This document shows positions 1-41,584 of a DNA stretch of 41,584 bases, one piece after another. The notes beneath the pieces are model-generated. The model ran no database searches. It was not told where the DNA came from and saw only the letters and a program-made list of their open reading frames with translations. Positions within the stretch are counted from its first letter, which is position 1. Every line of letters begins with the position of its first letter. Position numbers and translations under genes: made by a program. The DNA is from Choristocarpus tenellus KU-1152 (taxonomy: Eukaryota > Protista > Phaeophyceae), in NCBI GenBank assembly GCA_964200185.2, contig CAXNAD020000030.1, positions 1 through 41,584 of the forward strand, written 5' to 3'.

Positions 1-3000
1 TTGGAGTTGGTCTTGTGTGGGTTGGGGGGCGTTGGTGGGGGGGGGTGGGGGGTTGAGGAGGGGGGGGGGGGGGGTGGGCAGGCATTGGTTAAGCCTCTCT
101 TGGCGGTGTATGGGGCATCGATGTCAGAGGAGGATCAGGTGGGTCTGTTGGGGTTCTGTTTTTTGATGATGTTGTTACTGTTGCGATTTTGTTTTATTGT
201 GTGTACCTAGGTGTCACTCGTAGTCCCCTTCCGCCTGCCAAGATTAGTCAAGATTAGTCCCATTTTTTTTTTATTCTTTTTGAGGATGCCCTTTTTTATT
301 CCAAAAGACTGTTGCAAGAGATGCTTCTTACTGGCATACCTATATTTTTTCTAACCTTTATAGCTCCATGATAATGTCCACAAGTACCACTAGATTGAAC
401 CATGGTTATCTGATCCCAAAGTACGTCTTCACCCCTTCCACAAGTTGTTTGTTTTTTACAACACAGATGGGCTGTCTCTCCCCCTCCCCACTCCACACCC
501 ACCCCTTGTCCTGCACATGCCCTAGCAAGGTGCTGCATTTATTGACGTGGAAAATGTATTGGTTCTCGATCCTAACTTGCCCTTGTACCCAAGAGGTGCC
601 TCTTCTTTGCATGGCAACTCAATGGTATTTTTATTATTGTTATTTTGTGTTCCTTTATTTTCAGGTGGTGGTGAGACTTCTCTATCTCTTGCAAAGAGCT
701 GGCGCTCCCTTAGACCCCAACCTGGCCAAGTGGGGCTCTGCCACTGCCACTTCCAATACCTCAGAAACCCACCCGTTGTTCTTGACCAAGGGGGGTGGGG
801 GGGGGCAGGGGGGAGCAGGGTCTGGGTTGCGTCAGAAGTGGGAATGGCTCATTGCAGCATTTGACCCCCGACGGTTGAAATTTTCACTTGAGATGTTTCC
901 TATTGATCGCCCCGTTGATCCACCTCCCACATCCTATGAGACATGTGGGACGGAATTGAACCAGGCCACTGAGGTAGTGGGAGAGGGAGATGAAGAAGTA
1001 GAAGTTGTCCACGAAGGGGAGGAGGGTGAATATGAGATGGGGACAAGACAAATGTTGGGTACTGGTTGGAGTACGCAAGAGTTGGATGGAGACATTGGGG
1101 ATCAGGGCAAGGGGGAGGACTGTGACACTCACCTTGAGCTGGCCTCGGTGGGAAGGATGAGGAAAGAAGAAGTGTATGACCCAAGCTTTGTCCTTCCTCT
1201 GGTGGATTGGGCTCTAAGGGTGGCGGGTGCCCCTGCCCAGGCGGTGAGTAAAGAGTTTCTTTATGGTGGGAGGCTTTTGTTTGATCTTGCAGGTTTTGCA
1301 GTGTTATTTGAGGGAGTTTAAAGAATAGTTGATCTGTGCCTTTTTGCATTGCAAGTTTGTTGTTGTCCTGTATAGCCAAGGCAGTGATAGGGTAGGGAGG
1401 GGGGGATATAGAGTGAGCCCTTGAATCTCTCCAGTAATTGTGAAAGTGCCCTGTACCTTGCTAACGTCCACACACCATTTGATCTGCTTCCTTTGTGAAT
1501 CTTAGGTTCTCAATCACAGCATGAACCCCTTCTATTACCCAAAACCATCACATCACCAACACATAACCGGGCCACCAAGGCCACCTTTTTTTAGGCTAAA
1601 GGTCGATTCTAACATCAAAACACTGCTCCAGGTCGTGCAGTAGGTCCTCACCCTCCCCACCCCTCAGTATCTGACAACAGCTCCCCTAAGATGTTGACCT
1701 TATCGGTAAACTGGAACTCTAATTTTTGTGTTTTTTTTTCTCCTCCTCCAAGGTCTGCCAGCGAGGTCTGCTAGGCTACCTGTTGATGGCCACATCTAGC
1801 CTCTGTAAGTCCACAAGGACAGTGGGGTATTCCTGCCTACAGCAAATACTCAATTCTTTGATGCAGGTGACACAATCTTTTTAATAGTAGTTTTAATATA
1901 TATTTTTGAAATCTAGTTGGGCATACACTCTACACATATCTTCTGAGGTTGCAGGATTTGTGTCTCTTCCGGATCTACTGTGAGTGCCTTGATAGGACCT
2001 CTCCATCCCTCATTGCTGTTGGGAATGATGTGACATGTGTTTAAGGAGAAAGGGAGAGATTATTAGGAGTCTTTTACCTCTATGTGAATGGTCTTGAAAA
2101 GGTCCTGGGGCATGTATATAGCACTGGTGGTCTTACAAGCTTGCACCAAGGTGCCACTAGTTTTTCACCCCATGGTTCGGTCCTGTAATCCCAAGGCTGT
2201 TGCAGCTATGCTCCCAAATCTACCTAAATCTAACCAACATAATACCAGGGTTAGGGTTAAGGTTAGGGATGTGCCTTACATTTTTTTGGCAATTTTTTTT
2301 TTCTTGTTTTATAACTGACAGTGAAGGAGCTCCCCAATAGTCATATCCCCAGACCTCAATCCCTACCACCCCTCCCTCACCCCCATACTGATGACCTTTG
2401 ACTGCCATCCATTGACCTTTGTTTCATCTCTACCTTCCTCTGTTGAACCTACTGCTATACCTTCCCTAACCTTGACTGATCTCCGTTAGACTAATCTGCA
2501 CTCATCTCTGCCATGCATTTTTGCTCACCCCTATCCCTATCCCTGGCCCTAACCCTATACCTTTTCTCCAGGACAAGAAACAAACAGACAGCCGGTTTAA
2601 TCAACGGCCCCAGCTGGCTCTTCTCCTTCGCTGTTTAAGAGATAGCCTAGACGTTCCCTTCCAGAGGGTACCATGTGTGGTAGCTGTGTTGCTGGCACGT
2701 GCTTCTGAGGTGGTTATGTCCACCCCGGGTAGTGATGTGTACAAGGCTGTTAACAAGTGAGTCTCTGCGATGTGAATGTCAGTAAGTATGTATTGTTTGT
2801 GTCTGTCATGTGTGAATAGAATAGTATATTTTGTTGCATGGTATATGTGTTCCTGTGTGTGTTCTCCTCGCCTTGTCCCTGGCAGGCATTTTCTTGGAAC
2901 ACATCGGTGTTGGTATTTAATTGTCCTTGTGACTGTTTCAATCAGGGGAGGAGCAGCGAATCATGAGAGCTGGTCAGGGTTGTGTCTCTTTAGGGTTTTG

Positions 3001-6000
3001 TCTTGTTGTCTGTTTGAGCAGTACTACATTCCCAACCTCGAGAAAGTTTGAATTTGAAAAAAAAAAATGCACTGCCTTTTCTTGATTAAAACCATCATGG
3101 TATCAATTTTTTTCTCTAGCTCTAGCTCCAATCCTAACCCTTACTTGATCCAATCAACAAGTATAGAGAACGCATGCATTGCCCTCCCCTGGTCAACTCA
3201 GTCACATCAGCCTTATGCCAGTGCCTCACCGATGCAACCCATCTTCTCCCAAAAAACTTACGTCTCTTTTTCATTTTTCGCCCCGAGGAACACAGCTTCC
3301 TACTCCGTCGCCCCTGTATTCGGCTGCGTGAGCTCCCCATGTTTAACTCTCTTTTCACTGGAGTTCATGGATCTGGCGGAGGCATTGGGGCAGGGTCTGG
3401 GGCGTCTGGCCTCACCGCTGCTTCGCACCTGGACCCTGCCTCTGCAGGGAAGGCAAGACTGTGGCTGCTGAGGGGCTTAAGGGACGGTAAGTCCAGAACC
3501 CTGGAAGTATAAAGTTTGGTGTAGGGGGAGGTAGGCAGTGGAATGTGTGGAGCAATGCATACACGAGCAGAAGATAACGTTTTGGTATATTGTGGTATTG
3601 ACTGCTGATTGAGTGTAACCCTTCCCCCCCCCCTCCCTCCCTCCTGCCCTTCCCCACACTCATGTCTCTATCCCATCTTCATAACCTTGGAAGGCCTCCG
3701 GACTAGCCAAGACCTAGGTATTGTTGCGAGGGAGCGTGCTATTCCCCTGCTACTTGCCATGGCAGACTCTCCTGCTGGGGATGGAGATACGGCACTTATG
3801 GGGCTTGTACTGGACATCGTTTGCAGGCTTGCATCCCTGGAACAGTCAGGAACCAGGTGACCAGCGCTCACTCGGCCTCTACTCCTTCTGTTCATGATGT
3901 AGATGTGGGAGTCTTGAAAGCATGCTTTGTGATAGTGCTTATCAGTGCTTTGTCCAGAAATACAAAGAAGTCAATTTCAATCTTGTGTTTGAATTCACCC
4001 CACATGCTTTCAGGTACTTGCTCCTGTGATATTTCTGGAGGTGATACTTACAGCATTAAAGCAATAGTAACAACAATCCTTCAGCTCTTGGTATATTTGT
4101 GTAGAACTGGTTCATTAATCAAGTTTCTTAAGGTGGGAGTGGGGGGTGATCAACGTGACTTGATGTGGTCAATGTTGCTTCTGTCTTATCTTAATCAGCT
4201 GAGTGCTTGAAGTTAGTTCGTTTTCTTATTTTGCCTATTCTGGTGATGCTATAGTCTTTACGGATCACTTTATGTCCGCATCCATCATGGAAGTTGAAGG
4301 AAGAAAATATTTTCCAATTTCAGCATCAAATGTACAGCGCATGTTTTCCTTGCCTTGCCACTGTGGAAGTTGTTCCTACACATTTTTTCGACTTAATTTA
4401 AGGAGGGGCAACTACACCAGTTTCTGATGTTTTTTGTTGAATTTATTTTCAAGTTTTCTGTGTTGGAAAGATACGTATCAAGAGGGAAAGTGTTCGTTTG
4501 AAGTAGCACATTCATGAAGTTATCTGTATTCCAGGGTGCACTGGCTCAATGCATGATTGAATATCTGGCCTTTTGAAGTTGGTGCATCTATAATTTTATT
4601 TGTGACCCCTGTAGCTTTCTCTGCACTATAGCTCTTCAAGTAGTATCTAGATGTCTATTTTCGTACTGCGTTTTACCCGTATCATGACGTTACTGGACAA
4701 TCCTCTCCAATGGTGCCAGAGAGAGAGGTCGATGCATCAAAACAACACAACTCAGACTCAACATAAAAACACCATACTTGTAACACAAGCGGCCTATTTT
4801 TCGCCCTAACTCTGTCTTCCCCCTCCCTCCAATTTTTTCTTCCCCCCCCCCTCCTCTAACGATCTCTCTTCAGGTATCTCCTCAACACCATAGGTATCGT
4901 GGCATGGTGCCGTTTGGTTCTTGGCCGAGATCTCCCATCAACCTCATCCGCACTTGGTCAGAGGGTGGGAGGAGGAGGGGGAGAGCATGAGCTGGAGTCA
5001 AAATCCCTATCCCTGCCACCGGAGATGCAGATTGTTGTACTCCAGTTGCTGCGTACCTTGTTGCACTTGGGTCTGAAACTCAAAGACCCCCCTGTACTCT
5101 TGGTCCAAGAGTTTGCCCTTCTCACCCCAGATGTCATACAGTGCTGCTGTTCCAGGGTCAGGGTCAGGGCTGGGTCTGGGGTGGGAGCCCAAATTGTGAC
5201 AGAAGGTTTGGCTCTTCTAGTCGATGTGCACAGGGCGATGCGATCTGGATGTAGAGAAGAGTATTCTTTTTGGCAAAGCGCAATCAAGAAACCAGCAATT
5301 GAGTCTGGAATGGAAGTGGAGGAGGGAGGGGAAAGGGTGTGCGGGAGTAAGACTGGGTGGAGTGACGTCTGGGGACAGGAAGGTGAGGGGCTTGATCTGT
5401 CAATCAGAGAGGCTCTCTCTCTGAGTTTGGCTGTAGAGGCAGTGGGTGGTGTAAGTGCACCATCTCCAGAGGAATCTATTAATCTCCGATGGAAACTGCT
5501 GGGACTCCTGTCTTCACCTGGGGTGCTCGCAGTGAGAAGAACTGACGTATTTGGAGAAGAGATCGATGGGATGTCGAGGGTATTGGATAGAGAGGTTGAG
5601 GCTGCTGAGGGATTAATACGCTGGTGTATTAAGGCAGCCAATACAAAGTTTCGTTCTGCTACGGCCCACAATAGTCACAACTCTTTGAAGATAGGAACAA
5701 TGAGAAAGAATTCCAAGCAAAAGAGCCACATGGTGGATGCAGACACAATAGCTGCTCGTGGGGCATTGTGGGTGGTAGAACGGTTGCTAACTGGGGTAGG
5801 TGATCAGATGGGCCAAGCACCAGCAGTTGCACCTGGCATTGCCAATGCATTGAGGGCCTATCCCTCAGTGACCCTGTCAATACTAGGACTTGCTAACCCT
5901 TGTTCTATGGGACGCGCGCCCCTCTGCAGAATGGCTGTTTCCATTGCTCTTGCCCTCAGTCGTTGTGAACTCCCCCCCTGCTCTAAAAGTTCGGATCAAA

Positions 6001-6746
6001 ATTCGGTCAGATTGGACGAGGGCAAAAAGCATGAGGTAGGGGATGTCATGGGCCATGCGGATGCTGATGATGTGCTCCATACTCCTTCCTCGCTATTGCT
6101 TGCTCTCTCTCCATCACTCCAAAAGATGGTTGCCAATCCTACAACAATCTGTTTGCACCAAATAGTAGAAGATGTTGGAACAATGACGGGTAGAGAAGCT
6201 GCCTCAATGAAACCCCTACCGTCCTCTGTGGGCTCATCTTATTGGCTCTCTCTGACAGCTGCATCCCTCTTGACAGAGGTGATGACAGAGGACCCGGCGG
6301 GGGTGGCTCCCCTGTGCTCTGTCAATAGGGTTCAAGGGGATACAAGTAAGCAATTGTTGGGGGTAGAAGATGCTGCCTCTGGTGCCTGGCGCCTCCTGGT
6401 TAGTGTTTTGCCACAAGGTTTAGAAGAAGATTCAGACTTGAAAGCGTTTGCAGATCTTGTCCGTGATGTGGTTTGCAGTACAGGTAGGAATGGTAATGGG
6501 TGTGATAGTGCAGATGGAATAGATAAACGTGGTGAAGGTGAGAAGGATACTGGCCATGTAGTTTTGGACAAGGAAAAAGATGAACCCATGCCTGGGTCAC
6601 CTATTGCAATAGCCAAGAGTTGTGACAAGAAGCAGGCCATGGGGAGGACGGGGAGAAGAAGTAGTGGGAAGAAGCGCAGTAGAGGAGTTGGTCGTGATAA
6701 GGCAAAGAAGAGAAGGAAGAGTTTTTTTGATTCCTTCGTTGATTGA
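1..6746 (+). CDS. URB1: Nucleolar pre-ribosomal-associated protein 1 (URB1/Npa1), C-terminal part; 7 exons visible, 5' end outside window
   Basis: Exons 1-138, 665-1243, 1753-1866, 2572-2756, 3296-3486, 3694-3856 and 4874-6746, all joined by GT-AG introns with consistent phases. The spliced protein carries URB1/NopRA1 motifs in the expected order: LLAVYGASMSEEDQVVVRLL, VYDPSFVLPL, LLMATSS...R..GY..L, FNQRPQLALLLRCLR, QRVPCVVAVLLARA, VYKAVNNFLLRRP..LRELPMFNSLF, RLWLLRGLRDGLRT..D, IPLLL..ADSP, YLL..GIVAW. The basic C-terminus (GKKRSRG..KAKKRRKS) is NLS-like. Confidence 0.88.
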
Positions 6747-9700
6747 AACACTTAATATATATACATCCCCTTCTCCGATTTTCTTGATGGGAGTATTGTG
6801 ATATAAATGTATCATGACCAAACTCCTCAGCCAGATTCAAACTGAGAAACACTTACTCGACTTGTGGGTGTAGCGTTCTTGAGCCCAATGAAAAAATATT
6901 TGAGAGGTAGGTGGGTTCATGGTTAGAGATACATTCAAGCACACAGACAGGGTTATAGTGGAGGGGTGGGGATTGGTCCCCTTTACCAAGTGCCTTTAGG
7001 TAAACCTGAATTTGGCCAGAGTGTGGCTAGACCCCCTCATGCAAGCTTGTGACAGGATAATAATGCGTGGGAAAGGGAGGAGAGAGAGGAAGCTACCCTC
7101 TTCCTGCACCAATCTCATGATTACTAGGGAGAGGCAAGTTTGGCAGGGCGGAATGCTGGATCTGCGAGTAAGCGGTAGAGTACTAATCATGATAGACAAC
7201 AGTGTGGATTATTGATAAATTTGTCACACCTGTGCATCAAGAAAATATGTATGCCAAACTGGTAGGTAGATAGGTACAGAGTTTGCACGTCTCCAGATAG
7301 CAAAATATACAATTGTTACAGAGGTCACCAGTAATTTCCTCGTTATGTTAAACAAAAGATGCGATCAGCCAAGACAGGGATGACTTAAGTTCGTGACGAA
7401 GTGTACACAAACGTACACTCTCCTCTTGGATACTTACCTACTTGTTCGTATTGTAGGATCAACACAATACATGTACGAACCTGTACTTTGGTACTGAAGT
7501 AACACAGACTTACATTCTCAACCATTTTTTTGCCTTTTTTTTGTAGATTTTGTCCCACCCGAAGCATCAGCTGGAAGTGTCCACACACCACCTACCTTTA
7601 CTCCAACTGTTAACCGTTGAGATACCACTGTTCCATTTGACTACGTAGCGAACAATAGTGTCTCGATGTTCAACAAAACCAGAGGTGGGAACCTTCCCAG
7701 CCTTGGGTCATCACCCCACTAATATCGCGCACTCCCCAACCAGTCGTGTCAATTTTCGTTTTTCCCTTTGAGCCCGTCCCTAGACCCCCCCTCTATCACT
7801 CTATCTACAGAATTCCATCCTCTCATGACAATCGGTAAATAACGGCATGTGGCACCCAAAGCATTTTTTTCACCTATTATGTAGGATATATGCAAGCCCA
7901 ATTACTGCACTTCATCTTGACATCAGTTAACTTCAGATTTCAAGTCCTACGCTAAGTAAGGAGAGGAGTGTGCCGCTTCTCATGTTCTGTAACACCTTGC
8001 CCCCTTGACCATGCGTTTGAACGTAGATAGAGTGAAAGTATCTCCGCGGGTACGAGTTTTGCCCCATTTGTCCATTTGGGGCTTGACTCCCCACAGGTTT
8101 ATGATGACATTTTACCTACTCCGAAATGTTCCGGAGTAGATAAAATGTGTACGTTCGTTTATGGAAAGGTGTGTCCGAACAAGGATGTTGACACTACTTC
8201 CTAACAAACACGATAGCCAAAATTACATCAATATTTCAACATTGGATTTTGGCCCCCAAACAGACACGGCTCTCTACCCTCCAAGGTACTTTGATTCATA
8301 CATCTCTCAGATTTGGTAGGGATTACATTGCTGCGAGAGGAGAGACAAGTAGTCCATAGTACAGTACAAGAAATAATGAAAAAACGATCAATATACATGT
8401 ATTTATGCATGTATGTGTACATAATGCTTCAGCTACTGAATAGTGTATGGTGTATTGTATCAGTAAGCACAATCCTGGAAATTGCTAAGTTTACAGCCAA
8501 GGGCAACTATCTAAGTAACAAATATTGTATGATGTAAATATAAATGTTTCCTACCAGAGCGAACGCAGCTAACAGCTGATACTTGGATGACAGGCAGGTG
8601 ACAGGCATGAAGGTTGCATCCCCTGACCTGCTACTTACTTCACGCACCCTATAAAAGGAACTGAAGGCTAGTGAAAAGGTAAGGCTACCGTCAGTGGGTC
8701 GGAAGTTGTCCACATCAACTTTCTGTGTAACCACAAGACAGATAACATCCATCCGTTAAAAAAGCACCACAAACACATGCACACCACAGTGGACATTATT
8801 GAGCTCAAGAAGACTGTTCAGGAAAGTCATTCATTAGCCCAACCAGTCGAGCAGACCATCCTTGTTGCGTGAAAGTTTGGTTTTTATATGTAACGTGGAA
8901 GCCGCATATGCAGACAAGCAACATCAATATTAAAAAAAGCATGTCTTGTTCTTCTCATCATAGCCTGTCTAGCACAGAGTGCTCTCTATAATCAACTACT
9001 TTCCCCCTCCTTGAATCAAACAAAAAGTGAGAGCTAACCTCGATGATCATTCTTAACACAAAATCACTTTATCCCAACTCTAGGAAAACACTCTTACTAC
9101 CTGATCTACCCAAATAAAACCCAGTATGATACGAAGCAGTTGGAGAGACTAACCACCTTGTCAGTACATAATACCTCCTGCTCACTTACAAACAGATTCT
9201 AAACTTCTGATAAAGCTAGAATCAAGAGCAACAGATCTTCACTACTACTGCATCCAGCCAAGCGAAGGAAGTCACAGAGCTCCCTCAATCAGCCCCTCCC
9301 CATTGACCCCATGCATCTGCTAGTTCTACTTCTACCTCAAAAATAGTTTGTAATACACTTAAGTACTGCACTTTTCACTCTCCCCTAACTGGGTTTTATC
9401 ATTTTCAACCAACAGGGCACCTTCCCCTCTACCTTAGTGTAGAGGTAGAAGCCCCTTTCCTGCCTGGCATGAGCCTCTGACATAACATTGGACTAAAGGA
9501 AGTTTATCATCTTCAGATAAAAGAGATCCAGTCACACTACTACAACTACTACAGCCATGTATGCCCCTTGCACAAAACCACAAACCTCCTCTCCCCTCAA
9601 CCCAAAAAGAAACTTAGTCACCATGGAGCGGGGATAATGGGTGAGGGCCATGGGAAAAGTCAAGGGGACGGGCATCAGACTCAACAAAAAAATGAGTAGA

Positions 9701-9767
9701 CAACCCTCCAGTTACTAGAACCAAGAACAATGCTTCATCAGCAGGGTATTGCAGAGAACGTAGAGCA

Positions 9768-12700
9768 TTATGCCTTCTTGGCCTTCTGAGCAGCAGCTGC
9801 AGCATTCTTTGCAAGCGAATATGCAAGAGTGCCTGTCACTGCAATTAGCGCTCCAATCATCTGAGGAGGAGCATTATGATGCAGATTGCCAAATGAAGGG
9901 TTACACACACATACATCAATGATGGACACAAGATGCTGTTCACACGCATCTCACATTCATGATTGTTAGGGTTAGGGTTAGCTACAATTGTATGTTTGTA
10001 CAGGGTATTTTCAAGTAACTCTTTCCTCAAATGCACTCAGTGGCGAATTCAAGGGGGGAGTGAAACTGTTCTCAATCCGTGACACTCAAGGCACCCGAAA
10101 CATACGTTTCAGGCATCCATTAACTCCAGAAATCAATGAAAGGGTTAGGGCTGTAGCAACAAATCAACAACGCTAGGACATGAAGGAGCTTAGGGTTAGG
10201 GTTTGGGTTAGGGTTAGCTACAATTGCAATCGGAGGACATTAAGGAGGACCAAATGCACAAAGAGGATTGCGCAGCCTCTTTGTACAGAAGTTTAGTTAC
10301 AACTTTATACTTAAAATTATGAGTACCACACTCAAGCAGTCAGACAAAGTACTATGTATTGGGCGTTTTTCCCTAAAAAAAAAAGAAGGACAAAGCCAGC
10401 TTTACCAACTTATCAACAACATATTCACCTTATTCGTGGTCATCTTCTCACCCAGGAAGACCACAGCAGCTCCCATGATCACAACACGCCTGATGTAACA
10501 ATAACAAACCATGGGAGTTGGTGTTAAGGTTTCGTGCACAAGGTCAAGGGGGATACTCAATGCCTAACCCTAACCCTAACCCAAGTTGCATACTTCCCCC
10601 CCCAAAATAGTCCTCATCTGTAGCGGTAACTGCTAACTGGAATAAACCTCACCTCTTCATCTCACTGAACCATATTCACGTACAATTACATCACAAGGGC
10701 ATATTGGAGGTCAAGAACCTTTTGACCGCTTCCATCAAATCATGTCCACCATCTCCACAAGCAGAGATGTCTCATTACCATTATCAAACTGATCAAAGGA
10801 ATACCCACGCTACAAATTCCTATAATAGAGAGCATTACGACATCAACAAGACGATCATTTCAAGTAGAAAGGGAAGGCACGGCTCTGACAATTCAAAAGG
10901 TTCTCACTTTACAGTGTTACCAACGGCAGTGGACACAGGGTCAAGCTTGCCCAGCACACGGAAGCCCATCTCGTTGTAGAGGTAGTATGTCAGCCCGCAC
11001 GAGATAGTTGTCTGCACAAAAAACATTTTTTTTATATCACAAGTGTTCCACAAATGCAAAAGTAGAAATGGGTGATAAGAAACTTTACACGCTTCAGGAA
11101 GAGCATTACAAGCAGACTACAACAAATCTTAACCCTAACCCTAACCCTAAGTTTTTGACAGGGAGAGTGAAAAAATATATATAATTTGAAACAAAAAACC
11201 CATTGCAGCAAGGTGGGGTCATATCAGGAACAACACAATCAAGAGGAAACATGATGACAACAATCCAGAACACAAGTGCAACACTTAGTACAACCTTCCT
11301 TGGGATTGCGAATATAGAAATCCGTTGTGACTTGGACAAGAACATGTCAGCCTTTTCTCTTCCTGTGTGTTGTCCAAAATATGTGTATGTATACATATGT
11401 ATTTGTTTGCACATTTCAAAAAAAGGTAAAAAGCTTCATCATGAATGCTGTCCCTCTTCAGTCTACGAGATTGTTCTAATTTCAGGTAATACAAACTCAT
11501 ACAACAAATGAAACCATATTTCCATGTATTCCTAAAGAAAAATTAAACTCAGAGCAACTCCTCACAGAAGTCTTGAGAGGATTTTGATCTACTATATTTG
11601 ATACTCTTAGTTAAGGACAGGTCGCCAATACATAGAGAAGTCTGTGAGTTCTGCTTAGTAGAGAACAATTTCTAATAGTACCAACATCAGTGTCCCATCT
11701 TTGGAGCAAACTGTACATGCACTCCAAGCCCAGTCTAAATACTGACCATCACTACACATCAAGCCATATCACACTTGAATGAAGCCAGCTCTCGAGAGCT
11801 CTGTACACAAACCCTAACCCTAACCCTCTATCAAACATTCCTCTATCACAAAGAACATCAAATTCAACTCTTGGTATCACAAACATTTTACTGAAAAACA
11901 TGAAAACAGCTAAATGAATCACTTCCACTAATAAAAAACAAAGGATAGCATCTTCTCCTCAAATGAATATCCATACGGCATTACACCTTTCCATTAATTA
12001 ACACAAAACAAATTTTATTGTCCCTTCAAACTTAGGGTTAGGGTCAGAGTTAGGTATAGGACAAAATAAATGGAAACGGTCAATAAAATGGTTTTGTTGT
12101 GAATTGTGAATCACAATCAGCTAAGAAAAAAAAAGTGATTTGTTCTTTTGTTATTGCTGTAAAAATAACTCTTAGTGCCGCTAGCTTACAGGTTATTTAA
12201 AAACATAATCACTCAAAATATAAACCTAGCACTATACAAAGCAAAACACAAAAGTAACAACCTCAACCACAGCATTCATAACCTGTGCTTGAAGAGGGAA
12301 ATAGATTTTCACTAACAGCAATATGCAACCAGAGACTTGAACTTTAGTCCTCACCTTGATCAGGGTGTACTGATCCTCCACAGCATCAAAGGCAAACTTA
12401 GCCGACGCCCCCTCAAGAACCAGAGCAGGGACAACAAGGATGATGCTGGACAGAATGGTCAGCACTGCATAGGTATTGGATGCGTTCATGTTCTTCTTCT
12501 CCTTGTACTCAGGTGTCATCATCTGTCAAACAGGCAGCATCAAAGACAGTTTCATCAACAGTTTCATCTGTCAAGCAGTTTGATTGCCAATAAGTAAGAA
12601 AAAAATACACACTGTGTCCCTTCTACAATTGACCCATAGGGTTAGGGTGGTGGGGTTGAAACATTAAAAAAAATCACATTTAAGCAAAACAAAAAATTCC

Positions 12701-15700
12701 TACCGAAGCTGTCAGGCCATTTCTACAGTTACAAAAAAGAAGTCAGAGGATCGCAAATACCACCATAGCCCTAACCCTCAGTCTAACCCATAGAGTGCCT
12801 TTTTTCTCAAGCCATATGTGACTTACTCCTGTTCTGATTCATGATTCAATATGAGGGAGGAAGCATCTTACCTGCCAAACCATACTACACCTCTTGTTCA
12901 AAAGTTGAGTTTCCCCATCATCTCCACAGACACACATCGAAGAGGTATACACAGAACACTTCAAATTTCAATCAAACGTATACACAGAACACTTCAAACT
13001 TCAATCAAACACAACAAAACAAATACAGCATTTTTGACAGACTTTTGTTTGGAATTTACTACCAACAGCCCTACCATGTATACTGTGTATTATGTATACT
13101 GTGTACTATGTATACTGTATATTATGTATACTGTGTACTATGTATACTGTATATTATGTATACTGTGTATTATGTATACTGTGTGTCGTATACAAAAATA
13201 AAAAATAAAAAATTGTGAACAAGGGTGGAATATGGCAACCAACCATAGATATTACACACATCAAGTACTTGCTCCCCAACTTTGTCATGTCCACATATGA
13301 ACCTCCCAACTTTGGTGTAAGGACAATAGAGACAACGCCTTCCCCTTGAAAGGTACACAAATCACCTTTCAATAGAGACTTAGGGTTAACCCTAACCCTA
13401 ACCCTATACCCTTCTCATTCGACAATGCTTTCAAACAATCACCTTCTTGGAGAGGATGCCCCTGATGGCAAAGAACACGTTGGAGATCATAGCACACACG
13501 GAGGCGTATCCAGTGAGCTGAGACAGGTCCAGACCCTGCACTTACCAAAGCAAAACATATACACCCATCCCCATCCCCCCACACAATTACAGTTATAAAA
13601 AACACACATTTCATGGTGAGGGAGGGCAATGAGACCAGTCCTGCAACCAATACCCCTACTGCAAGTCACACCAACATTGTTGTCACTTAGCTATTTGTTG
13701 ACACTGACATGGAGGTACCAACACAAGATACGAAAGGCAAAGGCTGTCATCACGAGAAGGGGTAACATCTATGTCCTAACCCTAACCCCAACTCTAACAT
13801 CTATGTCCTATATGGGGTGTATCTCAAAATGTCATTTGCACAAGCAGCGAAAAGCACAACTTGAGTACCATTCCAATACCATTCCAATACCATGAACAGA
13901 GAGAAAATATAAAAAACAAGAAATGTACAAGACACAGGGACACACCAAAGAGAGCATGGGACACACGTACCTACTCGACCCTAACCCTAAACTCTTTATC
14001 CACTTCTGAACACAATGGTGAAATTGTAACTGACAAAAGAAACGCTACTATTCTTCTTTACACATCTCAGACCAAATCAACCACAACCCTAATGTATGAC
14101 GGAAGTTATGGATAACCCCTCGCTCACCTGCCCAGGCTTCATGGCAGCATATGCCACACCTCCCACAATGGGAAGGAGCCAGATGTTCACACTCATAGGC
14201 TGTTTGCAGGCAGAGACAGGGACCAAGAGGTATGGGGAGTTCAAGAGGAGGAGTGTGGTAGGAATCTATCATGCAGAAAAGGGTTAGGTGATTGAGGTCA
14301 ACGAGCTCAAAGACATGAGAGGTGTTTAATGTCCAACCAAAGATTACCAGGCATGGTCACATCAAAAAGGCAATCCCACATGCAGATGAATGTTATCCAA
14401 TCACATCACTTGCTTCACTGGGGAGGGCACAATTCATCTTTAAGTTGCTCAATGCCATAGACTAGGTCCACTACCACCCCTCCTCGATAAAAGAAAAGCC
14501 AAGTATATTCCATCTCTTATACAGAACATGTCTTTGGTCCAATGTCTTCTGTTGCCTCGCTCTCATCAAACATCTCATCGAATGCAACCTAATCTACGTC
14601 TCATCAAACATCTCATCACATGCAACCTAATCTACATCTACTGCCGGCATTTTTTTTTTTACCCCTTAAATGAACACATCACTTTATTTTATTTTTTATG
14701 GGCATAGCAAATATGTACAACAAAAAATTTCACAAACACTACCAACAGACCTTCCACGTGCCTCACCCCCTCCTCACTGCACACGCCTTCCAAGGAGTTG
14801 TCCCACCACTTGACATTTTTCAATACTCCAAAACAACACGTGATCAGTTGAGACCTCATCAAAAAAATGAATCAATAAAATAACACAGTGATACAAAGAA
14901 ACACAACTCGGTCTGACCTCTCACAACCTAACCAACCCTAACCCTTCCAAGCAAAGGAAGAAAAAAAATTATCACCTTGTCCCACCCCCTGCTCTAACAA
15001 CCGCATGAAAGGACATACCCCATCAAAATGCATGTCACGAAATGGTCCCAGGCAGGTCCAAGTCCACAAGGATAGGTTACAACTAGCCATAAAAGGACAA
15101 GTCAAGAACTAGTACCCGTGTATAGACTTATCCCCACCACATCCAAACAAGAATGACAACACAGCACATAGACCAGATATATACACACAAAAAAAGATTT
15201 ACTTGGCAATAAAACAAGCTACAAAAACTATTAAGAAATATCCACTGCTTGACATGCAAGAGGTAAAGAAGGTAAAATTTTGACAAGAACCGCAAGCACC
15301 AACGTATTCCCACCCTTACCTGCATTGACACTCCAAAGATGGGGCCGATGAGAGTGGATGCCACCGGTTCAGAGGCCTTGATGATGTGCGTAAAGGACAC
15401 TGCCCCAGCTCCCATAGACAGCACTGCCGCCAAATGACCACCAGCATGGAGAAGAGCGATTGGCAGCAACTGTCGCATACATGGGCAAGGACAGCAAGAG
15501 AGGAATATATCAATGAGAAGGTAAGTAGGAGGGCAGTAAATTTACTACAAGCAACGAGAAATGTCCTCTAACAAGATCTTTGTTGCTATGGAAGAGATTG
15601 ATACTTTGAGGGGAACGATGAGGGGGGAGGCAAGAGTCGACGACTAGATGTGGATTGCAACCACAACCATAACCCTAATCTTAGTTAATGCAGGTCGTGT

Positions 15701-17957: not shown

Positions 17958-18445
17958 GTGTTCTTTTCTTGTGTTTTACGCTATGTGAGAGATAGTGATG
18001 TTTGTACTGTGATAGCCCCTCACGTTGATGACCTTTTGGTGGCTGGTATAAATAATGTTTTGATGTGGGTAGCTGGTATAAATGATGTTTTGATTTGGGT
18101 AGCTGTTGTGACAAGGCTAGACGTTGCAAATGCAATTCGTGAAGTTGCCAAGTGTAGCAGTAACCCCAAAGTCATACATTGGCGTGCAGTTAAGTGTATT
18201 TTAGCATATTTGAATACGTGTCCCAGTGTTGGACTGAGGTTTAGTGGTTTTGATACGGAGTGTGAGTTGAGTCCATATGGTGTTGCTAGTTGTGCTGGGG
18301 ACTGTAATGATCGTAGATCGGTGACTGGAGGAGCAATAATGTCTGCAGAAGAAGCAATATCTTGAATGCCAAAGGTGCAAAAGGTTGTAGCTCTGCCTTC
18401 CACGAAAAGAAAGTATATAGCCCTTAGCAGTGTGGCACAAAGCAG
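17958..18445 (+). mobile_element. Degenerate Ty1/Copia LTR-retrotransposon pol fragment (RT and RNase H)
   Basis: The translation shows HVDDLLVAG (Copia RT YVDD motif), TRLDVANAIREVAK..SNP...HWRAVKCILAYL, GD.NDRRSVTG, and AIS*..KVQKVVAL.ST...YIALS. TGA replaces the conserved Trp at 18363, and there is an internal deletion plus a 30-bp duplication. No LTRs were recognised. Confidence 0.88.
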
Positions 18446-18629
18446 TAACGTACATAGCAGTATGTTGGGTCAGTCTTTGGTCATATCAGAGATAATTGAT
18501 GGCTACGACAAAGGCCCAGTGGATAATTATGTATGCTTACCATGTAACTCAACCTCCAGCTTTAGGCGACAAGCCTTACACGCGCTAAGCACTTCCACAA
18601 AGCGATTTTATTCATTTAACAGTACTTGA

Positions 18630-29019: not shown

Positions 29020-30572
29020 TGCTGTGATTAAGGATTTATCCGATGTTACAGACCTTGGTAAGCCTATTAGAATTAGGTGAAGTAGATCCTGCTGCTGTTA
29101 CGAAACCTTCTGTCGAGGATGTCTTGAATTGCAGAGTAAAACATGCCTCAATTACATTGAGGGTTAGGGTTAGATTGAGGCACACAAGCACAGTTTGTCC
29201 CTCAATTAAATTAAATGATCTGACCCAGAACCCACCAACTTTTATGTTGTTACTGGGTCTGCTTTGAAGCCTTATCTGAGCTACCTCTCCAATTCTAAAC
29301 TAGTTACGGTTAGGGTTATCATTAGAGTGCAGTGTATTACCAAGAGGTTGAGCCCTGCTTGGTAATGTACTTGGAAGGCATCTTTAGAAGCGAATTTGTT
29401 TCTTAGAAGATCACACCAGTTTTATTGAAGAGTTTCATCACACCGTAAACCCTAATGTTTCAAATCGTAGATAGTAGTACTTGAAAAATTCAATAAGAGT
29501 CTCTTCCACAGAAGGAGGTACTACTGGTGCTTTTGTGCAAAGAACCTGCACCACACCCACAGAGTATCCATGTATGTGTATGCTTTTTAACCTATGGTGA
29601 TTGCAAGCTGTGAAGCCATGCATTTGTTGGTTCTGGGTGTCCTGACTGCAGAGGAAGTCGCATCTTCTTCTAACTGGAACATAATCGATGCTGCTGTCTG
29701 CTTGACAAACTTACTATCGACATTGTTGAAAGCGATATTACTGCACTACCAAAGAAGTACAATAACTAGAAAATACTTATAATTGCAGGTAGGGGGAAAT
29801 ATTTACTTAACCTCTGGAGGACAGCGATCAAAGGAGGTGGTCAATTTGAGAAAGTCCTCCATTGTATGCAGTCTCGAAAACATCAAACCTTGATGGGGCC
29901 TAGTTCAGTACAATGTATCGACACACAAGTAGTAGTAGGTGTAAGAAATCGCATTAGAAATGCATTAGTTTTGCATCTAGAATATTGGAGAAACAGGGAA
30001 AATCATGAAATATTATATTTTTCAGTTGTTTCCTGTCTACAGAATAATGATGACCTCTAATGTACATGTACGTACATAAACCTAATTTTAATTTTTTGTT
30101 TGTCTTTAGATGGTGCAGACTGTTCCCACTGGGGCTTATTCTTGGGATCCTACTTACAAAGCCAGAGGAGGCTGGTCAATAATGGCCTGAAATTTGGACT
30201 CTGGATTCTTTGTAAGGAAAATGATTGATGCCCTGTCAAGACAAGGATGTCTTTGGGTTAGATGGGTCCCTATGACCGCCTTGTGGTAGATGTATTTTGA
30301 GTAACATGGAGGGCCCTGCTGTTAACCATGTGTTCACGCCTAATCCTCTCTATTATGCCTACACCATCCAAAGCGTTATTGACTGCATCTCAGGCATGGG
30401 TGTGGAGAATATATTGCATGAGCTTCAAGGTCTTAATTCAAGACTCAAGAGGACCAAAATCGACCTTGCTCTTCAAAGGTTTTACTCTGTCTTTCTTCAG
30501 AATGCACCAGATAAGCCATGTAGTGTGCTGTTCATTGGGCCGCAGTTGAAGGAGCAACTACAAATGGTTTAG
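29020..30572 (+). pseudogene. Decayed coding-like sequence, possibly a DNA-transposase relic
   Basis: Several broken ORF pieces on + (LQTLVSLLELGEVDP..., YSWDPTYKA, VENILHELQGLNSRLKRTKIDL..RFY) are interrupted by stops, frameshifts and telomeric inserts. The family cannot be identified with confidence. Confidence 0.25.
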
Positions 30573-35400: not shown

Positions 35401-38400
35401 AAACCCTTTCAACGCCCGATCAACAAATGTCCACCTTCCATTTGGTTTGCTTCTAACCCTTGATGTCTATGAAGATACACACTGACACAAAAATGTATTC
35501 CACCTGGTACAGCATGCAATTCTCCTACCTCAGAGGGAAAAACAAAAAAAAGACTTACCAGGAACTTAAGGTTAGGGTTAGGGTTAGGGTTAGGAAAACA
35601 AAAGGTCAAAGCAGAAAAGGCTCACCAGAGTTCGTACACAGGTGCCATTGATGCTCCCAAGGGTACCAATGGCAAATGCGCTCACCAGGGCAAGAGGCCA
35701 GTGTGATTGGTCATAGTCTAGGTTGACAATGAGCAGCATGGGGGGAAGCATAACTATCATAGAGGCCCCTAACAGCAATGGCCACAAAAATTTATCCCTG
35801 CAAGCAAGAATGGAATTGATGGACAGTACGGCGGAGAATGTAAGAAGGCGTTTGCAAACACTAGGGTTAGGGCAGAGAATAAACAGAGGGTTTCAAGAAA
35901 TTGGCTTAGGGTTAGGGAAGATTAGCAGGCAGGAAGGAAGAGATAACAATGAGTCATTTGCAAGTGGATGAGGGTTAGGGTTAGGGTTGACCACCATTAC
36001 GCCTAAGGAGAAAGTAAGGAGTTTGCAAGACTCTTATGTAAGAATATTATTGCAGTTGCTATTGATTTGAAGAGACTCGACTATAATTATTATATTATTA
36101 AAATAAAAATGCACCAGCAGTAATAATAATAACAATAATATTAACAAAAAAATGAAGTTTGGTGCAGAAATAGACTGATATTTCCTGCTGTAAATCAATC
36201 ACGTCAGGCACTGGCACACAAAGAAAGGGCCACCATTAGGCTGATTAAATCTTATCTACCCTAACCCTAACCAAAGTCTTGGTACTTGTCTGAAAACTAA
36301 ATCTAGGGTTAGGGTAGATCATTTGAGCAACAAGAAACTAACCCAAGAGGGAAAAGTTCCTGCACAATGACCCACGAGCACACTCTTCATCAGAACAACA
36401 AAGGGGGGATACAACTGCAGACCATTCAGATCCCTATACAACCGTGCAAACCCTAACCCTAACCCTAAGTCTTTGCACTATTCGTTCTCTTGTAAAACAT
36501 CTTGTAAAACATCTTGTAAAACATCTTAGGGTTAGAGTTAAAACACCTACACACCAACATTTACCAACGATAACTAAATCACTGAAAATACGCAATATCA
36601 ACATATCAAAAAAATACATAATATCGACGTATAAAAAAAAAAATAATACAAAATTGTGATAATATAACTAATGAGAGGTTCAGGACATGATGCTAACCCT
36701 AACCCTAACCCTAACCCTAAAGGTGCATACACCGCTAGCTAGAAACTGGCCTTACAGGAATGTTATCACCAATAGTATACCAATAGTATACCAATAATAT
36801 ACCAATAATATACCAATAATATACCAATAATATACCAATAATATACCAATAATAGGGAGTAATCCCCCAAAGGTTAGGTTGGGGTTTGGGTTGGGGTTAG
36901 GGTTAGGGTTAGGGTTAGGGTTTAGGTTGGGGTTGGCTTTTGGATTAGATATTAGTTGCCTCTGGATCATCTCAATCTGTACAGCAATAGACACCCTAAC
37001 CCTAAGATATCACACCTGCCACCGACATCCACGCATTGATTTCTAATCCCAATTGAGCCAAATGCAGCACCCAACATGGTGATAGACAAAAGAGCTATGA
37101 TGTCTAGTGTCTTCAAAGGCACCATGACATCATCCTGACAGGGCATTGAGGAGGCACAGACATCTTGGTCGAGCAAGTCGAGAATTATATTGCATTTGGC
37201 TTATATACACTAAACTAGTGCTGCAAACTATTATATCAGGTGTTACCATAACTTGAGACAAAGAAGATAAAACAAGCAGTTCAAATATAAACTTCATCCT
37301 AAATATGAAAATTAGTTACTTCTATGTACACAGAGAAAGAAGCATTGGGTATCAAGTGCTGTTCAGTACGTTTTAACCAAAAATACTACATATTATAAAG
37401 TGACTACTATGCACCCCCACAATTGAAACAATCTAATAAGTACCAAAAATTGGTTATTGATTGTCAGCAAGGATACTGACTACAATGGAAGAATGGACAA
37501 ACATACTCATCTTAAACAAAATCGCAGCAGGGGAACACCCTACATGGATCTGGACAAGGGCAAGCACATGTTACTATCCATACGGACGCACCTCAAACCC
37601 AAGCATAATATTATCAAGTACAAGTACAATATTATGAATGATATTCATTAACTTTCCCTAAACAAAACTACCTCGGTTGAGCATCACTTCAAACAGTTTG
37701 GGGAGTAGGATAGAGTAAAAATGCATCAGACGGCATCAGATTTTAATTACTTTATTTTATGGAAATGCAAAAAAGGCAAATTCGGATTTTCTTGACATTA
37801 GGGTTAGGGTTAGACCTGATTGTGGGTTCTTGCAAGACTCACACAAATATATATATATATATATATATTGATACCACCTTTTGCATTATACTATAGCCTG
37901 CCTTGCAAATTGTTGGAACTTATGCTCAACAGAGGAAGTGTCAATCTTCAACATTTCAATCTTAGAGTTTCTTGCAGAAGAAAATGTCTGACCAGCTACA
38001 CAAGGGAGATTGCATAATCCCATCCCCATCCCCAACCTTATCCCTAAGAACCATAGTGAGGTACAAATAGAACATGGTGAATAGTATGGACAGTAACATT
38101 ATACACCAATGGAATGAGTTGTATGTCACATTCCACCAATGGGGTGCACTTGTCCTTACGTCCCCAAGTTGACAGATTGTATATGTGCTGTATCATTTGG
38201 ATGCACAGAAGCACACTTGCCAGCAGCAGATACAAGAAACTGGGAAAACATAACATAACATAACATAACACAACACAACACAACACAACACAACATAACA
38301 TAACATAACATAACAAGATAATCTTGATACCCACAACTACAGGTTTGTTCAAAAAAGGTCACAAGCACCAACGTCTCATGCACAATACAAAATCATGAAA

Positions 38401-41400
38401 TAAAAAACATATACTGCACCCCACCTTGGCCAGGCGATCGTGGACATACCACCACATCACACCCAACTGGATGCCACCAGGCACTCCCTGCCCCACCAGA
38501 AGCAGGTTAGTCCCTGTTGTCATGCTGCTGCAGAAGGATGACCAGTTCAATCTTGAGGATACAAGACACATAATATACAAGGACATAAGACACATAATAT
38601 ACAAGGACATAAGACACATAATATACAAGGACATAAGACACATAATATACAAGGACACAAGACACATAATTCAGGCACGCAGAAGGGGGTTGCTTCAGAG
38701 GAGAGGAGACTAACTGGTACTCAGACTTAGTTCTATAAAAAAAAAACTGCATGTTCTGGTAAAAAATAACCCTAATCAATTTGACAGTTTCATTTCAATT
38801 TGGAAATGACTCGAGAGCTGAGAGCCAAGAGGATTTAAACGAACTTGCTACAAACATAGCTTTAGGTCTCATAATACAACCACATAATTAATCATAAATC
38901 ATCATTAGGGTTAGGGTTAGGGTTAGGGTCATAGGTCACGCACAATAAATACCATACCCACAAGAAAATAACACCCACCAGGTGGGGTGAGGAGCTCCAC
39001 TGGAGGAAAAAAAAAACACATTCCACATTCCACATTCCACATGACACGTGCCAATACGCAACTCTTCAGAGACACATGTGCACCCATGCAGACGACATGC
39101 CTAAAAAATAAAATAGTAGGTCTGAAAATGTCCTGTCATGTGCCAATCTCAATTAACTAATTGAATTTCAGTGATAGTTCAAATCTCTGTTAATAACAAC
39201 CTATTCAGTAACTCTAACCCTAAGCCATGCTAGGGACAAAAACATACTAAAATTAACAGGAGCTTTTCACCGGGGGTCAGAAACAGGAGGTGGTTCCACC
39301 TACTGGGCCGACCAGTGCTAGAATTTTCTGGCATGTCTCTGTCCATGTCCACTGGTCAGACCCAGTCTAAAATTGTCTAGCATGTCTGAATGATGTCTGT
39401 CAGCTGGATCAGGTATAACATTGTCTAGCATGTCTGAATGATGTCTGTCAGCTGGATCAGGTATAAAATTGTCCCATGTGGTTCGACCATGTCCCCCAGC
39501 TGGATCAGGTATAAAATTGTCCAATGTGGTTCGACCATGTCCTCCAGCTGGACCAGGTATAAAATTGTCCAATGTGGTTTGACCATGTCCTCCAGCTGGA
39601 CCAGGTATAAAATTGTCCCATGTGGTTCGACCATGTCCACTGACTGGTCAAACTTCGTCTCACATGTCCAGATCATGTCCACGACATGCTGTATTAGTCC
39701 AATTCACAGGCCAGGAAGGTCTACTCCAGACCATTCAAACTCAAACAGATTGGTCCAATTCGTGTGGTCACTCCATGCAAAGTAGTAATTGACAGCCTGC
39801 AAACATCCTAACCCTAACCCTAAGTTGAAATCATACCACTGTACAATCTAATATTTAGCGTAAATTAGAGTGAATTAGAGTGAAAGGGTCTCTGAGTGAT
39901 ATGTTATAGTGTGACATAACCGGCCTAGGTTATGTATGTATATTTTTGTATATTATCAAGCCAGTTGTAGGTGAAACGTTCTAACATGGCCAGGTCCATA
40001 GTCATCACTACCTCAACATGGCCGGGCCCCTGGCCAGCCCGGTAAAAGGACATTCAATCATGACCGAGTCCATGGCCATCGCTACTTCAACATGACTGGG
40101 TTGCCAACCATGTACAACCAGGTTCAAACATGACTGAATGCATTGTCATCAAAATGTTTCAACATGCCCAGGTCACGGGCCACCCTGCAGTCATTTGTTT
40201 GAGAGTGGGCATGCTAACAACAGTGGACATGCTAACAGCCCAGTCCTGTGAAAAACCCTTTTAGTGATAGTAATAGTAGTAATAATAATAGTACTAGTAC
40301 TAGAAATAGTGATAGTGATAGTAATAGAAATAATAAAATACAATGACTACGTATCACTAAATGCAAAGCAGCAGAAATCTGTAACTGACCCTAACCCTAA
40401 CCCTAACCCTTCCACTTTGAGCAATGTACCAGAGTAGTTAGTTAAAGACACTGTACAAAAAGTGTTCTATTCATGTTCTATTCATGTTCTATTCAGGATG
40501 TTCCTACGATTAAGTTTGACGTGAAGGTCAACTGACAAGAGAGTATGCACCTCACCTTTGGGTGATTTAGGGTCTACAACAACACTACCAGAATACCCAG
40601 TTAGATATTCAGGTAATGCTTAGGTTGGTCACTGTGGTCAAGTCTCAAGGAGTTGCCCTAGAAAACACAAATGACACTCCACCCCTGCACTGTCAAAAAC
40701 TTCTATAGTGATTTGCAGTCAATGAGTACAGCAATCGACGTCGCCTCTAAAGCTCTTAACGTCTCTTGGATATTTCACATTTGTCTCTATGTTTTATTCT
40801 ATTTTAATATGGTTAGGGTTAGGGTTTGTGCGTCTTTACATGGACTAATGGCATCTGTACCACAGATAGTACAGTCATCAGAATATTACTACCATCAGTA
40901 TTATCAATATTATTACCATCAGTATTATCAATATTACTACCATCAGTATTGTCAATATTATTACCATCAGTATTATCAATATTATTACAAAAATTGTGTT
41001 TCACACTATGCTCTGTGAAGACCTGGTAGAGTCCTTTCACCCTAACCCTAACACACGCAAAAGATAGCCCTAACCCTAACCCTAACTCAATCATCACACA
41101 TGATTTATCGTATGACATGGGATGACATGATATGACATCAAAACTGCCTCCTGCAGGTGATAGGTAATGTTCAGGATGCTCACTAACCTTACTTTGTAGG
41201 CACCCTTTCCTGCCTTTTGAAACAGTCCCTCCAGTGCCGTTTCCTGCTAACAAAAAATTAAGATTTGACTTTTAGGGGTTCTTGTAGTACAGGTTCTATC
41301 AATACTCAACCAGTAACAACCCAAGTATTCTGGAAAATAGTAAATTCTTCCTTATCACATTTACTATTCCTGCAGGGACTGCTTAACACAACATCACAAT

Positions 41401-41584
41401 CAGCACCACCATTGGCAATAATATCAAGTGCAGCAGCAAGATTACCTACAAGAGTATCATGGTATATATCATAACCCAACCCTAACTACAGTGCTCTTGG
41501 AGGTGGGAAACTCTGGACATCCTCCTCTGGTCATGAGGGGAAGGGATACTCCGACTTGCTTGAATGCTACTCACCCTCCCCCCC
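32477..41584 (-). CDS. Major facilitator superfamily transporter (Spinster-like), C-terminal half; 5' part outside window
   Basis: Minus-strand exons 41584-41575 (partial), 41246-41188 (NAGNAG acceptor, alternative start 41243), 38551-38425, 37134-37016, 35797-35626, 33659-33479 and 32640-32477, with consistent phases. The protein reads ..GGRQETALEG...YKVRLNW..TNLLLVGQGVPG...G......D.L..D, GSINGTCVRTLLMNTNVPEVRG.......NIG..IGP, followed by hydrophobic helices typical of MFS TM7-12. Confidence 0.82.
34612..34680. repeat. 14-bp tandem repeat (ctacatggaatcta), about 5 copies
   Basis: Direct reading; MFS intron. Confidence 0.85.
36768..36853. repeat. 11-bp tandem repeat (accaataatat), about 8 copies, between two telomeric tracts
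   Basis: Direct reading; MFS intron. Confidence 0.88.
38247..38315. repeat. Compound pentanucleotide microsatellite (acata)n(acaca)n(acata)n
   Basis: Direct reading. Confidence 0.88.
38557..38670. repeat. 24-bp minisatellite (ggacataagacacataatatacaa), about 4.7 copies, abutting an MFS splice acceptor
   Basis: Direct reading; the acceptor is at 38552-38553. Confidence 0.9.
39254..40263. mobile_element. Possible non-autonomous DNA transposon (imperfect TIRs, internal 48-bp and about 72-bp subrepeats)
   Basis: The left end taacaggagcttttcaccgg matches the reverse complement of the right end (taaaagggtttttcacagg) at about 16/20 positions. A 48-bp tandem array (about 5.5 copies) lies at 39370-39637 and three CATG-rich units of about 72 bp lie at 39980-40175. 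Confidence 0.4.
40881..40988. repeat. 24-bp minisatellite (aatattactaccatcagtattatc), about 4.5 copies
   Basis: Direct reading; MFS intron. Confidence 0.9.

Follow-up and report, generated by a model that had tools for sequence, protein, structure and literature searches.

Short interstitial telomeric tracts at high density in introns and other non-coding DNA of the brown alga Choristocarpus tenellus

Short tracts of the hexamer TTAGGG, the telomere repeat of brown algae (10.1101/2024.05.11.593484), are scattered in large numbers through genes and the DNA between them in Choristocarpus tenellus KU-1152. They are described here for one stretch, contig CAXNAD020000030.1 of assembly GCA_964200185.2 (the window, which is the whole contig of 41,584 bp), and are followed from there into the rest of the genome and into related algae. 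The explanation favoured, by a modest balance of probability, is that the tracts are short interstitial telomeric sequences (ITSs) left by break repair with telomere-type patching, telomerase being the most likely agent. The field of tracts is a real and very dense case of a known process, notable for its density and not as a new system. A first-pass annotation, made from the letters of the window, had proposed a candidate undescribed genome-evolution system; the same origin has been documented in primates, rodents and horse (PMC2246262, PMC7215372), and an intron-rich, exon-poor landscape of such tracts is on record for Caenorhabditis elegans (PMC6800518).

The motif is far more frequent in the window than base composition would give. 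Exact matches to TTAGGGTTAGGG number 48 on the two strands together, against none in 100 dinucleotide-preserving shuffles. A scan of the window finds 71 perfect tracts of at least 9 nt (33 on the plus strand and 38 on the minus strand), which together with degenerate copies form a field spanning 2247-41486; 57 perfect tracts are at least 11 nt long. Tract lengths range from 9 nt to the longest perfect run of 29 nt, and the density is some 1.4-1.7 tracts per kb. When the window is scored by 18-mers, 16, 10, 15, 13 and 14 loci have 0, 1, 2, 3 and 4 mismatches respectively, where Markov-1 random sequence gives about 0, 0, 0, 0 and 1.5, a spread that arises partly from short tracts being scored along with their flanks. 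The signal is specific to the telomeric hexamer: in a comparison of 10 classes over 283 kb, the telomeric class has 675 matches and each other class of the same composition at most 34. The tracts are thus, as first described, numerous, in both orientations and graded from perfect to degenerate. Their supposed even spread is not seen, since stretches of 6.8, 4.2 and 3.5 kb hold none.

The tracts are instead strongly clustered. The densest cluster places eight of them in 750 bp (36258-37005) and includes the longest perfect runs, at 36693-36720 on the minus strand and 36894-36922 on the plus strand, the latter sitting within a degenerate 63-nt array (36872-36934). At 20449-20498 the two orientations meet as an inverted pair, in which (CCCTAA)4 is followed after 12 nt by (TTAGGG)2.3. 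A general rule of paired orientation or spacing was considered and rejected: three inverted pairs lie at 164-173 bp, yet the distance distributions show clustering only. A fixed junction phase is ruled out by the near-uniform phases at which tracts start and end, and an association with minisatellites was dismissed because tracts are no nearer to such arrays than are local random positions. Within 29135-29190, one tract of 14 nt lies between the arms of an 8-nt inverted repeat (GCCTCAAT and ATTGAGGC), giving a hairpin-like junction.

The window is far from an isolated case. Exact matches genome-wide number 21,313 for two units, 2,344 for four and 490 for six, whereas the reversed motif gives 61, 2 and 0, and matches are spread over thousands of contigs; the tracts are therefore not confined to this contig, as a purely subtelomeric field would be. 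An estimated 25,000 tracts of at least 11 nt are present in the genome (about 0.15-0.2 per kb), and a quasi-random sample of 81 kb gives 0.20 per kb, with a tract in 11 of 29 loci; the genome sequence sampled came to 200 kb plus 30 loci. At the same threshold the window carries 1.37 per kb, which is 7-9 times the genome mean and the highest density among the largest contigs, so that the rate of about 1.5 per kb first given is that of an outlier and not that of the genome. Other contigs carry 0.88 (C4), 0.28 (C5) and 0.15 (C3) tracts per kb, the nuclear contig C2 has 2 matches in 83 kb against the 48 in 42 kb of the window, and further hot contigs include C37, C67, C73, C105 and C109. Contig C274 has a C-strand telomeric array from its base 4. 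The largest contig (G000:C1, sampled as L001-L004; 120 kb, 25% GC) has no tract in 40 kb and is probably organellar or foreign. Tracts make up 2.46% of the bases even in this hot window, and about 0.3% genome-wide, amounts that do not bear out the suggestion that they inflate introns across the genome.

Insertion is observed directly where a copy with a tract can be set beside an empty one. The empty state was judged on paralogous repeat copies or on array periodicity, at five sites. The most useful repeat is a miniature inverted-repeat transposable element (MITE) of about 290 bp with the terminal repeat AGTATCTTAGAGGGTA, which has 13,227 terminal-repeat matches, corresponding to some 6,600 copies at about 75% mutual identity. 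It contains two telomere-like seeds that are sometimes rewritten to perfect repeats. At the internal seed, TTTCGG/AGTAGG, a copy on contig C3 has gained 14 telomeric bases and a TGT filler with neither loss nor duplication, the copy L044 has been rewritten to TTTAGGGTTAGG by substitution only, its length unchanged, and the other 36 aligned copies keep the seed as it was. At the terminal seed, CTTAG/AGGGTA, 470 copies among about 13,700 terminal repeats read CTTAG-GGTT-AGGGTA, a perfect tract of 13 nt. Outside the MITE, a 10-mer array on contig C4 has gained exactly 12 nt, in register, and in another repeat CCAGAGTTGC has become CCAGGGTTAGGGTTGC. The window holds one MITE copy, at 8011-8311 on the minus strand, in which neither seed is rewritten and which serves as the empty-site reference; the other copies seen lie in loci L022-L050 and on contigs C2, C3, C4 and C5.

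At all five paralogous sites the tract appears in one step relative to the empty homologous site, and at all five informative sites one to four bases already in register with the repeat are found at the point of insertion (GG, TTAG, GTT or G, TTT/AGG, CAG), a sample too small to yield a rate. The scars seen are those of end joining: clean additions of 12 and 4 nt, the TGT filler, a rewrite of zero net length and target duplications. Direct repeats of at least 7 nt border the tract at 5 of 107 junctions, where mismatched flank pairs lead one to expect 0.26, and three of these are clean (12, 11 and 7 bp). In the window, an insert of about 20 nt (13775-13794, minus strand) lies within an exact 12-bp direct duplication of TAACATCTATGT, at 13763-13774 and 13795-13806. 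Nearby, at 13380-13406, a G-strand run and a C-strand run are fused head-to-head, 31 nt past the donor site of exon 5 of a sugar-phosphate transporter gene described below. Two plus-strand tracts at 9965-10226 have in common a 9-nt tail, CTACAATTG. Read-through into a telomerase RNA was considered for this recurrent tail and rejected: it occurs beside tracts twice in the genome, both times in the window, the junction being unique to the window, and represents a local duplication.

These features suggest how a tract may arise. A broken 3' end that happens to finish in a few telomere-like bases would be extended by telomerase, or by another enzyme with a telomeric template, and the extended end would be rejoined by end joining, often by way of microhomology. 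Such a process would leave behind insertions, either clean or carrying filler bases, as well as rewrites by substitution only, and where the break was staggered the insertion would be flanked by a short target duplication. Once in place, the tracts would decay neutrally, persisting in introns, untranslated regions (UTRs) and other non-coding DNA while selection purges them from coding exons, and the process would act genome-wide and in at least the sister genus. Breaks as the substrate and telomerase as the enzyme are what we infer. The idea of telomerase-mediated or telomere-templated patching as a repair route, as first proposed, thus gains from the insertions at seed bases, the fillers, the duplications and the fusions, whilst the part given to telomerase itself stays conditional. 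The gene content gives no sign of an obvious rewiring of repair: a match to the TERT RNA-binding domain is found on contig C1404, and homologues of Ku and PIF1 are also present, which is in keeping with telomerase-type repair so far as presence goes. Loss of repair or telomere genes was rejected as a cause, as TERT, Ku and PIF1 were all found.

Three genes are confirmed in the window, and the distribution of tracts over sequence classes was read from the first two described here; exons were mapped by database proteins (tblastn), by Pfam or by a spliced contig, and were not joined into a spliced model. A gene of the TPT family of sugar-phosphate transporters occupies 9813-16647 on the minus strand; it is identified by Pfam PF03151 on exon pieces and by tblastn of the database protein P0151, and has nine coding exons (16647-16507, 15927-15832, 15472-15320, 14202-14128, 13538-13437, 12525-12355, 11020-10907, 10527-10408 and 9863-9813). 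An unnamed spliced gene lies at 19800-25272, also on the minus strand, with exons at 25161-25272 and 22989-23107, a terminal exon at or below 21008 and a further exon starting at 25761; its introns, at 25273-25760, 23108-25160 and 21009-22988, all have GT..AG ends on that strand. As a stop occurs by 20862 in all three frames, 19800-20861 is 3'UTR. The third gene is NopRA1/URB1-like, with a large plus-strand exon at 4899-6746 (database protein P0267, PF16201) inside the 6.8-kb tract-free stretch at 3141-9965. Both P0151 and P0267 are Choristocarpus tenellus proteins and match the window at about 100% identity. Five housekeeping genes were initially called; only these three genes are confirmed, and Pfam run on 28 open reading frame pieces of the window names TPT exons alone.

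In the TPT gene and the unnamed gene, no tract of at least 9 nt lies in 1,401 bp of coding exons (a density of zero), while the TPT introns hold 17 in 5,812 bp (2.9 per kb), the introns of the unnamed gene 13 in 4,521 bp (2.9 per kb) and its 3'UTR 7 in 1,062 bp (6.6 per kb). Measured against the intron density of the same two genes (10.3 kb of introns), the absence from coding exons has a probability of about 0.02. The 3'UTR is the densest class, and its seven tracts stay in the spliced mRNA contig. Hence the view that perfect tracts are kept out of conserved exons stands for coding sequence, and has to give way for the 3'UTR of a mature mRNA. This 3'UTR, of at least 1.06 kb, has tracts in both orientations, so that the mature mRNA has UUAGGG and CCCUAA runs. 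Relative to transcription, 21 tracts are sense and 16 antisense; the lack of a transcribed-strand bias argues against a function at the RNA level. About seven tracts would be expected, at the window mean, in the tract-free 4.2 kb at 15678-19875 that separate the TPT gene, at its 5' end, from the 3' end of its neighbour.

Tracts are also found at TPT loci of other brown algae, and, judged by this sequence comparison of a small sample of orthologous loci, the feature clearly extends beyond Choristocarpus. Discosporangium mesarthrocarpum (L051, 20.6 kb) has nine tracts of at least 11 nt (0.44 per kb), three of them within introns of the TPT gene. Laminaria digitata (L056, 10.7 kb) has six at that threshold, all at the 3' end of the gene and within a local tandem duplication. 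One tract each, at the same site, is present in two Ectocarpus assemblies (L054 and L055), and the outgroup Chrysoparadoxa australica (L057, 12.3 kb) has none. The Laminaria duplication, of about 230 bp, takes in the 3' end of the gene (L056:9200-9920), and each copy has telomere-like tracts and a repeated exon fragment. In Discosporangium, a short tandem repeat at L051:6280-6450 has every unit opening with (TTAGGG)2-4, evidence that local duplication multiplies some tracts. Further orthologous loci were sought through the NopRA1-like exon, the protein search returning the window's own protein alone. Conserved synteny was rejected as the cause of the hot spot, since the TPT gene is the only one that the window and the Discosporangium contig have in common.

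Among the alternative explanations, one holds that the field is an artefact, whether of assembly error, contamination or a contig that is simply subtelomeric. That the assembly is a draft from short reads, 164 Mb in 27,310 contigs, gives this idea some purchase. It is nevertheless extremely improbable. The window was compared over 19800-25799 with Logan contigs, which are the product of another assembler, are not raw reads and may derive from the data behind the assembly itself; they represent three runs of a single study, two DNA-like and one RNA-like. These contigs are identical to the window at all tracts in the 6 kb. The DNA-like ones span every tract with zero differences, their only breaks falling in the minisatellites at 21029-21352 and 22584-22914, and the RNA-like run supplies one 1,635-nt contig of depth 195, spliced over three GT..AG introns of the minus strand and holding seven tracts. 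The outcome that the first-pass annotation named as refuting, tracts missing from reads, is thus not seen at the level of contigs. Moreover, the tracts lie inside ordinary genes that have orthologues in other brown algae, motif matches are found on thousands of contigs, and the window has neither a terminal telomeric array nor a subtelomeric satellite context. Carriage by mobile elements, with tracts belonging to MITE ends or retroelement tails and spreading by transposition, is improbable as a general account. It draws on the telomere-like terminal repeat of the MITE, on the 470 variant repeats with their 13-nt perfect tract and on the very uniform, subfamily-like +4 form. However, MITE terminal repeats account for only about 2% of tracts and none of the 71 tracts of the window lies in this MITE. 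Masked flanks of 120-150 bp from 107-171 tracts show no sharing in 240-322 kb outside this one family, and at the hundreds of Logan contigs that end at tracts the flank consensus agreement is 0.36-0.41, that of unrelated flanks; the tracts do not, then, all lie within one transposon consensus. Nor does the MITE variant behave as a distinct subfamily, a candidate rejected on the following evidence. It occurs at both element ends (135 copies at one and 241 at the other, with a few elements variant at both), and the 29 variant copies examined have no other diagnostic base in common. Variant copies have a mutual identity of 0.773 and normal copies one of 0.731, with 0.747 for comparisons across the two sets, and variant copies are unclustered on the family tree (7 Fitch changes against 8.2 in shuffles, P = 0.18), the star-like form of that tree being still compatible with a variant master copy. 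The pattern favours recurrent rewriting in place. Mobile elements are refuted as the main source of tracts, and a minor share is possible.

The tracts might alternatively be functional elements under selection, that is, sites for a telomere-repeat-binding protein acting in chromatin, transcription or splicing, as plant teloboxes do. Consistent with this, they lie within transcribed units and are missing from the 4.2 kb that precede the TPT gene, and in plants and Neurospora telomere motifs serve to recruit PRC2 (PMC8788455). The neighbourhood of TPT exon 5 (window 13380-13538; L051:13083-13315; L054:10376-10386) has tracts in three genera: the tract lies 31 nt past the donor in Choristocarpus and 36 nt past the same donor in Discosporangium, in the same orientation, and in Discosporangium and Ectocarpus tracts closely precede the exon as well, about 41 nt and 53-77 nt before its acceptor (two boundary estimates). 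In Discosporangium exon 5 is bracketed by inverted tracts. Against selection stand the use of both orientations without strand bias, the continuum from perfect to degenerate copies and the very patchy density; the exon-5 coincidence was noted post hoc and has P of about 0.1 for the two-genus match alone, and PRC2 and H3K27me3 are absent from brown algae (PMC8788455). A functional role for the tracts is quite unlikely, with selection on some of them still a possibility. The main rival is templated copying without telomerase, by polymerase-theta-type end joining, gene conversion or slippage, with telomeres or existing ITSs as templates and microhomology as the seed. Seed microhomology, fillers, the substitution-only rewrite, the inverted and head-to-head pairs and the tract copied together with its 9-nt tail fit such copying equally well, and strong clustering is what would be expected if nearby copies serve as templates. 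Yet that tail is the single case of a non-telomeric flank copied with a tract, flanks being otherwise unrelated; an original source of the motif would still be required, and slippage is unable to make the first two units. Copying of this kind is rated as rather unlikely.

Several observations also weigh against telomerase-type patching of breaks. The link to telomerase is an indirect one, and the one recurrent tail beside tracts is a local duplication. Informative empty sites number only five, all in repeats. The star-like MITE tree, with its near-exclusive +4 form (+10 in about 1%), fits the transposition of a variant master copy as well. Over 19800-25799 no polymorphism at tracts is seen among the three runs. 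A gap in density of about 50-fold between nuclear contigs is not accounted for by this reading, and the near-identical place of the exon-5 tract in two genera, for all that it is post hoc, hints at a hot spot or at an element under selection or related to splicing. Telomerase-type repair of breaks still seems the better fit to the observations as a whole, among which the seed bases, the diversity of flanks, the distribution over sequence classes and the spread over the genome are, like the insertions relative to empty copies, seen directly.

Comparison with systems already described is instructive both for the likeness of the junctions and for the difference in density. The human genome is some 3.1 Gb and that of C. 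elegans some 100 Mb. In the 164 Mb of the alga, loci with at least four perfect units are put at about 1,380 (about 8 per Mb), scaled from 59 loci among the first 100 matches. Human has 229 loci of at least four units and horse 142 (PMC2246262, PMC7215372), so that density per Mb is roughly 100 times higher in the alga than in human. In primates, rodents and horse, short ITSs entered the genome as double-strand breaks were repaired with the help of telomerase (Nergadze et al. 2007, PMC2246262; Santagostino et al. 2020, PMC7215372). The algal tracts resemble them in using the species' own telomere hexamer, in having few units in either orientation, and in occupying unique non-coding DNA, coding exons never being hit; also in one-step insertion, in-register bases, clean, filler and rare-duplication scars, and occasional head-to-head runs. 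Of the insertions in horse, 78% fall where 1-6 bases were in register, 17% are unmodified and 4.5% have duplications, and some complex events include head-to-head runs (PMC7215372); the target duplications found here, at 5 of 107 junctions, come near the 4.5% of horse (PMC7215372). Unlike mammals, the alga adds some 25,000 shorter tracts and has tracts in a 3'UTR, no insert derived from telomerase RNA has so far been found in it, and its empty sites are paralogous repeat copies in place of orthologous loci.

A second comparison is with the nematode. C. elegans has about 1,260 ITS sites, 63% of them intronic, almost none exonic and with UTRs depleted (Frenk et al. 2019, PMC6800518), and there the ITSs are tied to silencing marks and small RNAs (PMC6800518). 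Tracts number on the order of a thousand or more, run from perfect to degenerate, are enriched in introns and are nearly absent from coding exons in both organisms. In the nematode, however, the repeat is TTAGGC and the sites are several-fold sparser than in the alga; its ITSs are depleted from 3'UTRs, whereas one 3'UTR is the densest class in the alga. Plant teloboxes are likewise short telomere-derived motifs in or near genes. Each telobox, however, is a functional element of some 1.3 units, a single motif with a promoter or 5' bias that is bound by TRB proteins, which recruit PRC2 (PMC8788455); the algal tracts run to 2-5 units, occur in either orientation and occupy introns and a 3'UTR. 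The promoter or 5' bias is not seen here, the DNA upstream of the TPT gene being tract-free for 4.2 kb, and the lack of PRC2 in brown algae (PMC8788455) makes a plant-type telobox role by way of that complex unlikely. In Ectocarpus and Chlamydomonas, telomere-like seeds in subtelomeric satellites have been proposed to prime telomerase after damage (10.1101/2024.05.11.593484). Those seeds lie in subtelomeric satellite arrays of about 98 bp, whereas the Choristocarpus tracts lie in unique genic DNA on thousands of contigs. The window itself has large intronic minisatellites at 21029-21352, 22584-22914 and 39368-39638 (a 19-mer in 17 copies, a 37-mer in nine and a 48-mer in five).

For the annotation of brown-algal genomes, tracts of this kind can seed spurious joins of reads and contigs, and should not be read as chromosome ends or fusions. 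The process could be measured at some 13,000 replicate targets provided by the abundant MITE and its pair of telomere-like seeds. If events are independent, seeds have been rewritten in 3.4% of the roughly 13,700 MITE terminal repeats and in 2 of 38 copies of the internal seed; on the same condition, rewriting per seed would run at about one-quarter to one-third of the per-base substitution rate, the elements being some 10-12% from their consensus. It is conceivable, as a speculative and rather doubtful extension, that telomeric 'writing' is a regular and measurable mutational process in early-branching brown algae, that the rewriting of seeds occurs near the rate of point mutation and that some products, such as the tract by TPT exon 5, have perhaps been retained. 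Should repair of the telomerase type be the source of the tracts, Choristocarpus, and probably other brown algae, would carry about 100 times more scars of such repair per megabase than mammals do, and would provide thousands of natural junctions for the study of telomeric addition at internal breaks, where vertebrates offer a few hundred loci.

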